From Macrostomum lignano (lineage: Eukaryota), in assembly GCA_002269645.1 (NCBI GenBank), contig NIVC01002008.1, positions 31,489 through 83,259 on the forward strand: a stretch of DNA of 51,771 bases, in the 5' to 3' direction. Under the pieces are notes generated by a model. That model was given only the letters and a program-made list of their open reading frames with translations. It did no database searches and was not told the origin of the DNA. Shown in pieces: positions 25,390-29,083 of the stretch. Every line of letters begins with the position of its first letter. Position 1 is the first letter of the stretch. Both the position numbers and the translations under genes were made by a program.

Positions 25390-28300
25390 ATGGGCAACCA
25401 GATCGCGCTGATCACGAAGTCTGGCAGCATCCAGGTGGGCGAGCGGTCGAACCCCAGCCGGGCTGACTGGATCACAGAGCACGCGGTCGCCACGGGACTC
25501 TCCGTTGTCGAAGTAGAACGGCTGTGGCTGCGGTTCCAGCAGCTCGGCTGCACCTCCGAGGGCCTCATCACCAACGACGTGCTCCGGAAGCGGTCCATGT
25601 ACAGCGAGGATACGTTTCTTAGAAAATTTATCGGCTACCTGCGCGACGACTTCCGGTCGGACGGCAAAGTGACCTTCCAGAATTTCTGCAACGCCATGTA
25701 CTGGATTGAGAAGGCCACGGCGAGAGACAAACTGAATGGTGAGTGACAGACAGACAGACAGACAGACAGACAGACAGACAGACAGACAGACAGACAGACA
25801 GACAGACAGACAGACAGACAGACAGACAGACAGACAGACAGACAGACAGACAGACAGACAGACAGACAGACAGACAGACAGACAGACAGACAGACAGACA
25901 GACAGACAGACAGACACTAAGACAAAAAGACAAACAGACAGAAGACAGACAGACAGACAGACAGACAGACAGACAGACAGACAAACAGACAGACAGACAG
26001 ACAGACAGACAAACAGACAGACAGACAGACAGACAGACAGACAGACAGACAGACAGACAGACAGACAGACAGACACACAGAAAGACAGACACTAAGACAG
26101 ACAGACAAACAGACAGACAGACAGGCAGACCGACAGACAGACAGACAGACAGACAGACAGACAGACAGACAGACAGACAGACAGACAGACAGACAGACAG
26201 ACAGACAGACAGACAGACAGACACTAAGACAAAAAGAAAAACAGACAGAAGACAGACAGACAGACAGACAGACAGACAGACAGACAGACAAACAGACAGA
26301 CAGACAGACAGACAGACAAACAGACAGACAGACAGACAGACAGACAGACAGACAGACAGACAGACAGACAGACACACAGAAAGACAGACACTAAGACAGA
26401 CAGACAAACAGACAGACAGACAGGCAGACCGACAGACAGACAGACAGACAGACAGACAGACAGACAGACAGACAGACACTAAGACAGACAGACAGACAGA
26501 CAGACAGACAGACAGACAGACAGACAGACACACACACACACAGACAGACAGACAGACAGACAGACAGACAGACAGACAGACAGACAGACAGACAGACAGA
26601 CAGACAGACAGACAGACAGACAGACAGACAGACAGACAGACAGACAGACAGAGAGACAGACAGACAGTCAGACAGACAGACAGACAGACAGACAGACACT
26701 AAGACAGACAGACAGACAGACAGACAGACAGACAGACAGAGAGACAGACACTAAGACAGACAGACAGACAGACAGACAGACATATAGACACACAGACAGA
26801 CAGATAGACAGACAGACAGACAGACAGACAGACAGACAGACAGACAGACAGACAGACAGACACACAGAAAGACAGACACTAAGACAGACAGACAAACAGA
26901 CAGACAGACAGGCAGACCGACAGACAGACAGACAGACAGACAGACAGACAGACAGACAGACAGACAGACAGACAGACAAACAGACAGACAGACAGACAGA
27001 CAGACAGACAGACAGACAGACAGAAAGACAGACAGACAGACAGACAGACAGACAGACAGACACTAAGACAAAAAGACAAACAGACAGAAGACAGACAGAC
27101 AGACAGACAGACAGACAGACAGACAGACAAACAGACAGACAGACAGACAGACAGACAGACAGACAGACAGACAGACAGACAGACAGACAGACAGACAGAC
27201 AGACAGACAGACAGACAGACACACAGAAAGACAGACACTAAGACAGACAGACAAACAGACAGACAGACAGGCAGACCGACAGACAGACAGACAGACAGAC
27301 AGACAGACAGACAGACAGACAGACAGACAGACAGACAGACAGACAGACAGACAGACAGACAGACAGACAGACAGACACTAAGACAAAAAGACAAACAGAC
27401 AGAAGACAGACAGACAGACAGACAGACAGACAGACAGACAGACAAACAGACAGACAGACAGACAGACAGACAAACAGACAGACAGACAGACAGACAGACA
27501 GACAGACAGACAGACAGACAGACAGACACACAGAAAGACAGACACTAAGACAGACAGACAAACAGACAGACAGACAGGCAGACCGACAGACAGACAGACA
27601 GACAGACAGACAGACAGACAGACAGACAGACACTAAGACAGACAGACAGACAGACAGACAGACAGACAGACAGACAGACAGACAGACACACACACACACA
27701 GACAGACAGACAGACAGACAGACAGACAGACAGACAGACAGACAGACAGACAGACAGACAGACAGACAGACAGACAGACAGACAGACAGACAGACAGACA
27801 GACAGACAGACAGACAGACAGACAGACAGACAGACAGAGAGACAGACAGACAGTCAGACAGACAGACAGACAGACAGACAGACACTAAGACAGACAGACA
27901 GACAGACAGACAGACAGACAGACAGAGAGACAGACACTAAGACAGACAGACAGACAGACATATAGACACACAGACAGACAGATAGACAGACAGACAGACA
28001 GACAGACAGACAGACAGACAGACAGACAGACAGACACACAGAAAGACAGACACTAAGACAGACAGACAAACAGACAGACAGACAGGCAGACCGACAGACA
28101 GACAGACAGACAGACAGACAGACAGACAGACAGACAGACAGACAGACAGACAAACAGACAGACAGACAGGCAGACCGACAGACAGGCAGACCGACAGACA
28201 GACAGACAGACAGACAGACAGACAGACAGACAGACAGACAGACAGACACAGACAGATGGGCGCCCGCCAAATCCCCTAACCCCCCCGGACATTGGCGTCG

Positions 28301-29083
28301 CTGATACTTTGAACATCAAAAGTAAAAAGACTTGCATAACTGGCTACTGCCTGTGCCGGTAGTGAGTAGTATAATTAGTCGGCTCGCCACTCCGCAGCGA
28401 TCTTCAACTACCTGAACAACGGCAACCCGCTAGACAAGGACACCGTGCGCCAGATCCTGCCCAAGATCATCGAGAACGACTCGGAGCAGGGCTACGACCG
28501 GCTGGCCGACATCCTGATGGAGCAGCTGGCCGGCAGCGGCACCGAAGGCGGTGGCGTCAACGCCGCCGAGTCGTACATCAGCCAGGACAGCTTCGTGCAG
28601 TACTGCCTGGACCGCATCCCCAAGAGCCGTCTCGAGGCCCTGCTGGCCTTCAACGTTATTCCGAGGCACGTCAGCGACCAGGCCCGACAGGAGCTCGAGC
28701 GGGCCGAGGCTGACGGAGGCCGCAGGCAGCCAACGCAAGCGGCCGCAGCGCCGGAGGCTCAGGTGGACGCTGCCGAGGCGGTCTACACGGTGCCGACTGA
28801 CGCTCAGCTGGCAGTGGTGGCGCAGCGGGCGAGCCGGCGGGACTACCGGCTGCTCGGCAACAAGCTGGGCTTCTACGAGTCGGACATGAACCAGATCGAG
28901 AACCTGTACCGCGGCGACCGCTTCCAGCAGCTGTACCACATGCTGATCGAGTGGCGCAAGCGGGAGGGCAAGGCGGCCTACGTGATCACCCTGCAGAAGG
29001 TGCTGCAGGAGTGCCTCATGCCGGACATTGCGGCTGAGCTCAACCCGAAGCACCGGGATGAGCAGAAGACTTGGAAGTTGTGA
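25390..29083 (+). CDS. Putatively N-myristoylated calcineurin-B/CHP-like degenerate EF-hand protein with a C-terminal Death domain, ~344 aa
   Basis: Exon 1 25390-25738 (phase 1, G|GTGAGT) and exon 2 28398-29083 (CCGCAG|CG) join in frame. N-terminus MGNQIA. CHP/CNB-like [37 protein letters not shown]. Death-fold pattern [65 protein letters not shown]. Confidence 0.85.
25745..28256. repeat. 2.5-kb (GACA)n microsatellite with higher-order structure, filling the intron
   Basis: Directly visible; starts immediately after the GTGAGT donor. Confidence 0.97.

Follow-up and report, generated by a model that had tools for sequence, protein, structure and literature searches.

Calcineurin B (CNB, PPP3R1/CNB1) and the CHP1, CHP2 and tescalcin proteins start with a Met-Gly (MG) consensus and are built on a four-EF-hand domain of ~170-200 residues, in which the entering helix of the first EF hand (EF1) reads E-[VI]-x-R-L-x-x-R-F-x-x-L. 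KChIP, NCS-1 and CIB2/3 serve channels or transporters as small accessory proteins, often lipid-modified, which hold on to a cytoplasmic helix. CHP1, KChIP, CIB2 and CNB act by clamping an amphipathic partner helix in a hydrophobic groove. Death domains (DDs), for their part, act by homotypic assembly, and the DD adaptors, which define the wiring of cell-death and innate-immune signals, are known to pair the DD with a DED, a CARD, a TIR domain or a kinase. The gene described here, from the flatworm Macrostomum lignano, encodes a 344-residue protein that very probably joins a calcineurin-B-like pseudo-EF-hand domain to a DD. It lies on the forward strand of a 51,771-nucleotide (nt) stretch of GenBank contig NIVC01002008.1 (positions 31,489 to 83,259; assembly GCA_002269645.1), hereafter the window.

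An EF-hand-type domain devoid of canonical calcium loops

The N-terminal part of the protein had been read, in an initial annotation made from the sequence of the window, as following the CHP1/CNB pattern, and both structure prediction and profile comparison bear this out. In the AlphaFold2 model (18-sequence alignment, mean predicted local distance difference test score (pLDDT) of 78.8, predicted template modelling score (pTM) of 0.52), residues ~26-222 form an all-helical domain. Foldseek analysis of this domain reports CHP1 as the best match (2ct9_A, E=4e-4, template modelling (TM) score 0.61), with KChIP1 (TM 0.64), CIB2/3, SOS3, CNB (TM 0.60-0.65) and NCS-1 ranking next. A profile of the N-terminal domains of 23 family members returns CNB, with a match that extends through all four EF hands (E=4.7e-15 to 5e-14, 58.9 bits), KChIP1 (5e-11, 45.8 bits) and CHP1 (3e-10, 43.4 bits). 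Taken singly, the flatworm sequence reaches CNB only at E=0.02 (phmmer), and the full protein scores 14.8 bits against Pfam EF-hand_7 (E 0.036), the cut-off being 30; this weak single-sequence signal is the reason for the bare database label "Death domain-containing". The likeness to CNB, CHP1, CHP2 and tescalcin extends to the MG consensus, the length of the domain and the EF1 helix, and the EF1 and EF2 loops of CHP1 are non-binding, too. In contrast with these proteins, the flatworm one has no canonical loop, and its family possesses an extra helix before EF1 and an extra segment after EF4. No CNB or CHP carrying a DD is found among the solved-structure matches, and we know of none.

The four loops of the flatworm protein are degenerate in different ways. 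Gly and Val occupy positions 1 and 12 of EF1, and Arg and Asn positions 3 and 12 of EF2; EF3 is 1-2 residues short and devoid of acidic ligands, and EF4, with Ala at position 1, is interrupted by a 9-residue insert. The canonical loop, D-x-[DNS]-x-[DNS]-G-x-[ILV]-x-x-x-E, of which the CNB/CHP/NCS class requires at least two, occurs in none of the four, and the N-terminal domain matches no Pfam EF-hand model at E<=0.01, in line with the earlier remark that the loops lack the usual Asp ligands. EF1-EF3 show a like degeneration of their ligand positions throughout the family. The EF4 of most relatives, D-x-x-x-x-G-x-I-[DNT]-E-[DE]-Q, retains some of the ligands, with Gln at position 12, but this partial set is destroyed in the flatworm; owing to it, 11 of the 23 relatives match a Pfam EF-hand model at the same threshold, whereas the flatworm domain matches none.

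A working EF-hand calcium sensor is therefore ruled out for the flatworm protein loop by loop, as well as by the Pfam result. A bona fide CNB or CHP orthologue is likewise ruled out, by the 344-residue length, the DD, the loops, the extra helices and a structural-alignment identity to CNB of 14-17%; CNB proper comprises ~170 residues with four functional EF hands and no extra domain. KChIP, NCS-1 and CIB2/3 have a fold of the same class (target-normalised Foldseek TM scores of 0.56-0.64) but share only 14-18% identity with the flatworm domain, keep two or three working EF hands and end after the EF-hand domain. Since the four-EF-hand fold is kept but the calcium loops are not, the protein is filed as neither CNB nor CHP: judged by its sequence, it is a structural relative of the CNB/CHP/NCS class, a pseudo-EF-hand protein, and not a working calcium-binding member of it.

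Ahead of this domain, the N-terminus MGNQIAL fits the N-myristoylation pattern G-{EDRKHPFYW}-x2-[STAGCN]-{P}, as had been proposed, so that the modification is predicted. An MG start is present in 68 of the 76 relatives that bear the N-terminal signature; the pattern is matched by 63 of those 68, and Ser stands at position 6 in 59. The exceptions to the MG start or the pattern are mostly truncated models, or N-terminally extended ones with an internal MG at the aligned position. Three further segments are hallmarks of the family: a conserved helix P-x3-[ND]-W-I-T-x-H-A before EF1, the near-invariant E-V-E-R-L-W-x-R-F-Q-Q-L-G and a conserved segment L-P-x7-L-x-F-x-I-[IL]-P after EF4. The residues invariant in the family are E41, V42, R44, L45, W46, R48, F49, Q50, Q51, L52, G53, G58, F96, P205, D265, N271, L273, W302, L315 and L319.

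The C-terminal Death domain

The initial annotation had also assigned a Death fold to the C-terminus, and here the single sequence suffices: residues 252-331 match Pfam PF00531 with 41.7 bits (cut-off 22.6, E=1.3e-10). The AlphaFold2 model places six helices in this region (251-261, 266-272, 277-286, 291-309, 312-321 and 325-329) with pLDDT values of 92-97. Foldseek analysis reports hits with the DD of RAIDD (2o71, TM 0.83, root-mean-square deviation 1.8 Å) and that of ankyrin-G (TM 0.81, root-mean-square deviation 1.0 Å), and it also matches the DDs of FADD and RIPK1. In sequence, the DD of RIPK1 scores E=4e-6 with the flatworm protein taken singly and is the closest one to a profile of 23 family DDs (2.4e-14), which then returns FADD (1e-12), CRADD and PIDD (~1e-11) and, after them, the ankyrins. 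The region thus passes the curated Pfam threshold and is predicted to adopt the six-helix bundle, two of the features by which the Death domain superfamily is recognised.

Between the two domains, residues 223-240 have pLDDT values below 50, and the linker is variable in length and rich in indels; a disordered, indel-rich linker of this kind fits two independent modules. The resulting layout recalls that of FADD (DED+DD), CRADD/RAIDD (CARD+DD), MyD88 (DD+TIR) and Drosophila IMD, all of them small proteins made of two modules, a DD and a recruitment module of another kind to which it is tethered. It differs from these DD adaptors in that the partner module of the family is of EF-hand type and not a DED, CARD, TIR domain or kinase, and in the presence of a lipidation consensus.

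A widespread but unnamed family

The flatworm protein belongs to a group of full-length, collinear orthologues of ~290-345 residues, which are 29-36% identical to it with more than 85% coverage and include Xenopus tropicalis LOC101730712, Lottia LOTGIDRAFT_236111 and Nematostella LOC116607750. Its placement in this group is supported by E values of 1e-38 to 1e-54 (query coverage 86-96%) and by a shared gene structure. Molluscan members come from gastropods, bivalves and one chiton, and annelid members from Owenia, Dimorphilus, Paralvinella and Lamellibrachia; the rotifer Rotaria and the orthonectid Intoshia possess one as well. Among deuterostomes, the group comprises echinoderms (Anneissia, Patiria, Diadema), hemichordates (Ptychodera, Glandiceps) and amphioxus, together with vertebrates as diverse as rays, sharks, Polypterus, lungfish, eels, many frogs (both Xenopus species), caecilians, turtles, alligator and lizards, while Nematostella represents the cnidarians. 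With orthologues ranging from Nematostella to reptiles, a novelty confined to flatworms is ruled out. No mammal, bird, arthropod or nematode (ecdysozoan) appears among the named matches listed, which does not prove loss; this absence would explain why the gene has been overlooked in the main model organisms.

The N-terminal domain also occurs on its own. Proteins of Styela clava, Lingula and Seison have it without a DD, perhaps because they are truncated or because the DD was really lost. In the unicellular holozoan Pigoraptor chileana, a 439-residue protein with an MG start carries the N-terminal domain in front of a different C-terminus, made up of an acidic stretch and then ~200 residues that do not match any Pfam domain. 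Its occurrence there suggests that the N-terminal domain is older than animals, and the distribution of the full-length proteins would date the fusion with the DD at least to the cnidarian-bilaterian ancestor.

The database entries bear names such as "uncharacterized protein", "hypothetical protein" or "Death domain-containing protein", or names that were mis-transferred, e.g. "ribosomal S7". The architecture is present in databases from more than 50 species, and a few entries even carry both EF-hand and Death Pfam matches. In the open-access literature we found no paper on the family and no characterised protein that pairs such an EF-hand-type domain with a DD, which is not proof of absence. 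The initial annotation did not recognise the architecture from characterised proteins; the gene and its relatives have already been deposited. What is new is the recognition of the family and of its architecture; the sequences, including a GenBank entry for the flatworm protein, are uncharacterised and not undiscovered.

Splice junction and second genomic copy

The initial annotation had joined two exons, flanking a GACA tract, in frame into ~344 residues of which no single open reading frame (ORF) shows the whole, and this gene model stands (coordinates in Table 1). The start ATG at 25390 (context gtcaacATGG) opens a 349-nt exon 1 that ends at the donor ATG|GTGAGT, and the acceptor ...CTCCGCAG|CG at 28397/28398 leads into a 686-nt exon 2, counting the TGA (29081-29083). 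The spliced coding sequence of 349+686 = 1035 nt yields 344 codons and a stop, and the ORF list shows its halves separately, at 25285-25746(+) and 28445-29083(+). The motifs quoted earlier, including LGCTSEG, FNYLNNG and K-L-x-A-I-F over the junction, are all found as written.

A second copy of the gene, 99% identical, is located on GenBank contig NIVC01000566.1 of assembly Mlig_3_7 as hypothetical protein BOX15_Mlig001396g1 and is annotated with identical exons of 349 and 686 nt; a family profile search returns it with E=1.2e-108. The BOX15 annotation derives from a genome-guided RNA-seq transcriptome (StringTie, TACO, TBONE) (PMC5730564). At least 17 orthologues align without gaps over the exon junction, which reads K-L-N|A-I-F-N-Y-L-N-N-G in the flatworm and, e.g., K-I-R-A-I-F-K-M-L-N-N-G in other species. 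Moreover, the homologous Ala/Gly codon of K-[LI]-x-[A/G]-I-F is interrupted by a phase-1 intron in Lottia (intron 3 of an 8-exon gene) and in Branchiostoma (a multi-exon gene); given this common position and phase, the flatworm retains one ancestral intron of the seven in the Lottia gene. The third-position GC content of the coding sequence is 0.88, compared with a GC content of 47% for the window. The annotated copy, the gap-free orthologues, the intron phase and the contrast in composition and identity together confirm, at the level of sequence, that the junction is real and the gene intact; a chance ORF or mis-joined exons are ruled out by the first three.

The coding sequences of the two copies differ at 5 of 1,035 nt (window-specific bases 126A, 210G, 565C, 732G and 810C), three of the changes being synonymous and the other two giving M70I and R189S. 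Exons are 99.4-99.6% identical between the copies, the aligned upstream repeat-rich blocks mostly 78-96%. The locus in the window is best explained as an allele or homeologue of BOX15_Mlig001396g1 and an intact gene of the expressed type; the M. lignano DV1 genome is reported to hold large duplicated blocks (PMC5730564). Three UniProt models from an older M. lignano assembly, labelled "EF-hand domain-containing", are frameshifted or fused forms of the same gene, which points to additional genomic copies and to poor earlier models.

The only intron differs more between the copies, measuring 2,659 nt in the window vs 1,242 nt in the second copy (L001 10350-11591), a difference of 1.4 kb. In the window, Tandem Repeats Finder (TRF) identifies a (GACA)n microsatellite at 25745-28256 (period 4, 629.5 copies, 89% matches), and exact GACA units account for 81% of the intron. 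The array comprises two higher-order units of ~1.15 kb each, with a self-offset identity peak at 1154 nt, and 141 nt of unique sequence separate it from the acceptor. Both splice sites are intact, and over the final 140 nt of the intron the two copies share 94% identity. As the average M. lignano intron measures 1.1-1.4 kb (PMC5730564), a length of 2.7 kb is not extreme.

Proposed function and alternative explanations

The best overall explanation, which we consider fairly probable when architecture and mechanism are taken jointly, is that the gene represents an unnamed, old metazoan family of adaptor type that works independently of calcium. The specific mechanism is a more tentative matter than the architecture, since it is drawn by analogy from structural neighbours. 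The lipid-tagged N-terminal domain would clamp an amphipathic partner helix in the hydrophobic groove typical of the fold, the partner being either the tail of a membrane protein, as in CHP1-NHE1, KChIP-Kv4 and CIB2-TMC1, or a calcineurin-A-like helix. The tethered DD would then nucleate or join a homotypic DD assembly, so that the partner would be coupled to DD signalling through a RIPK1/FADD-type DD placed on it, probably at the membrane. As the initial annotation put forward, such an adaptor may serve in immunity or apoptosis. In its broadest form, which we hold with equal reserve and as somewhat doubtful, the family would be a pan-metazoan DD adaptor, a calcium-blind, lipid-tagged clamp that ties a membrane or phosphatase partner to RIPK1/FADD-type assemblies; its N-terminal domain would be pre-animal, the DD would have been fused before the cnidarian-bilaterian split, and mammals, birds, most teleosts and ecdysozoans would have lost the gene afterwards. 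TRAM/TICAM2 offers a functional analogy, as a small adaptor whose N-terminal myristate puts a homotypic signalling domain at membranes; the domains differ and no homology is expected.

Several points weigh against this adaptor function. Searches of the open-access literature found no functional, expression or interaction data on any family member. Helix binding by the groove is extrapolated from structural neighbours at 14-18% identity, and it is possible that the groove is plugged from within, by the conserved NWITxHA helix or by the post-EF4 helix. With a pTM of 0.52, the AlphaFold2 model gives no reliable information on how the two domains are arranged. At position 6 of the flatworm protein, Ala replaces the usual Ser, its myristoylation being predicted from the motif, and no second membrane signal, either Cys or basic patch, is visible in it. 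A single myristate alone usually binds membranes weakly, TRAM relies on a polybasic/phospho-switch second signal of a kind not seen here, and the myristate of CNB itself is not mainly a membrane anchor. With a lone, weak myristate and no visible second signal, the term "membrane-anchored" may overstate the case. Lastly, the lack of mammalian, avian or ecdysozoan matches implies that the role is dispensable in those lineages.

Two alternatives start from the N-terminal domain. Its fold is that of the NCS/CNB/KChIP sensors, and many orthologues have an EF4 of the form D-x-[DKN]-x-[NKQ]-G-x-I-[DT]-E-[DE]-Q, that of Anneissia (DNDGNGFITEDQ) being canonical save for position 12; together with the 11 Pfam matches among 23 members, these features would suit a calcium sensor with a calcium-myristoyl or conformational switch, similar to recoverin and NCS proteins, in which calcium controls the exposure or recruitment of the DD. 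Such a sensor is nevertheless quite improbable, because all four flatworm loops are defective and EF4 has, family-wide, Gln, Lys or Ala at position 12 in place of the Glu of a binding loop, the Glu-to-Gln exchange at this position being a classic knock-out of calcium binding. Only slightly less improbable is an alternative or decoy calcineurin subunit, whose N-terminal domain would sit on the B-binding helix of calcineurin A and either bring the phosphatase to DD complexes or sequester it. CNB is indeed the best sequence match of the N-terminal profile, above KChIP1 and CHP1 and along the whole of the four EF hands; the helix that enters EF1, EVERLWxRF, is near-identical to EVDRLWKRF of fungal CNB, and the MG start is common to CNB and the family. 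Nonetheless, the low structural-alignment identity to CNB, a top fold match that is CHP1, and conserved helices absent from CNB, ahead of EF1 and behind EF4, all argue otherwise, and CNB needs calcium in its structural sites for a stable heterodimer, sites that are gone in the flatworm protein.

A further alternative concerns the locus itself and not the family. The copy in the window might be a non-functional duplicate in which the swollen microsatellite intron impairs splicing, the other copy alone being expressed. The longer intron with its duplicated ~1.15-kb GACA-rich block would agree with this, as would the large duplicated blocks of the DV1 genome (PMC5730564), and the transcript evidence refers to the other copy. 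We nevertheless judge it as improbable as a calcium sensor, for the ORF is intact, only two amino acids differ from the other copy, the splice sites, the intron's final 140 nt and the 90 nt preceding the ATG are conserved (94% and 100% identity for the latter two), and the intron length is unexceptional for the species.

If the adaptor function is true, the family would provide an undescribed input into DD signalling, from the tail of an ion transporter or channel or from calcineurin A, conserved for more than 600 million years. If the protein is instead an ordinary structural accessory protein, the value is smaller, namely a named family and a corrected annotation. The gene is present in tractable species, i.e. 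Xenopus, Nematostella and Macrostomum, the last with transgenesis available.

Features of the locus and its surroundings

Table 1. Features of the pseudo-EF-hand/Death domain gene and of neighbouring genes, in positions of the window
Feature	Position	Strand	Basis or remark
5' flank, probably 5' untranslated region	25300-25389	+	90 nt before ATG 100% identical in second genomic copy
Exon 1, codons 1-116 and base 1 of codon 117	25390-25738	+	boundaries as in annotated second copy
MGNQIAL myristoylation consensus (predicted)	25393-25410	+	in exon 1
Conserved helix before EF1	25453-25494	+	in exon 1
Degenerate EF1 loop	25546-25581	+	in exon 1
Degenerate EF2 loop	25648-25683	+	in exon 1
Sole intron, phase 1, GT...AG, 2,659 nt	25739-28397	+	TRF, self-offset identity, second copy, Lottia/Branchiostoma
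Exon 2, remainder of codon 117 to codon 344 and TGA	28398-29083	+	sequence, alignment, AlphaFold2 model
Shortened EF3 loop	28412-28441	+	in exon 2
EF4 loop with 9-residue insert	28529-28591	+	in exon 2
Family-specific post-EF4 helix	28622-28714	+	in exon 2; F-x-[IV]-[IV]-P motif
Disordered linker	28715-28798	+	in exon 2
Death domain, residues 252-331	28802-29041	+	Pfam PF00531, AlphaFold2, Foldseek, profile; followed by 13-residue tail
ATTAAA, candidate polyadenylation signal	29183-29188	+	pattern match, 100 nt past stop codon
Tetraspanin exon	22040-22414	-	Pfam PF00335, E=4e-16
DRG-type GTPase exons	43482-43961, 45339-45800	-	MMR_HSR1 1.2e-17, MMR_HSR1_Xtn 1.4e-27, TGS 6e-22

In the 5' flank, a polypyrimidine-CAG (AG at 25323-25324) could be a putative cis- or trans-splice acceptor; M. 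lignano mRNAs are frequently trans-spliced (PMC5730564). The gene is flanked on both sides by minisatellite arrays. Upstream, two 20-nt minisatellites, at 24098-25071 (AAGTCTGGCGCCTCTCCATT x49) and 25074-25296 (CGGCAGTTCATTAAGATTAG x11), end ~95 nt before the ATG, and downstream a 12-nt array at 29282-30082 (TCCCGCTTCCGC x67, 99% matches) begins ~200 nt past the stop and yields spurious (PL)n and (RKRE)n ORFs of ~300 residues on both strands. The window contains more than 25 such arrays with periods of 11-40 nt, e.g. at 14283-15613, 17588-19324, 32190-33272, 35301-36267 and 39523-40251, and most of the listed ORFs of at least 120 residues are minisatellite translations. The long ORFs 34999-36309(-), 39463-40482(-) and 29191-30132(+), as well as those derived from the GACA tract, are accordingly rejected as genes, being translations of tandem repeats.

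Nothing suggests a functional link between the gene and its neighbours, a tetraspanin and a DRG-type (developmentally regulated) GTPase. In the second copy, two tetraspanin genes are located upstream of the death-domain gene. In the window, a 34-nt minisatellite (44564-45429) lies mostly between the two DRG ORFs and runs into the 5' end of the one at 45339-45800.

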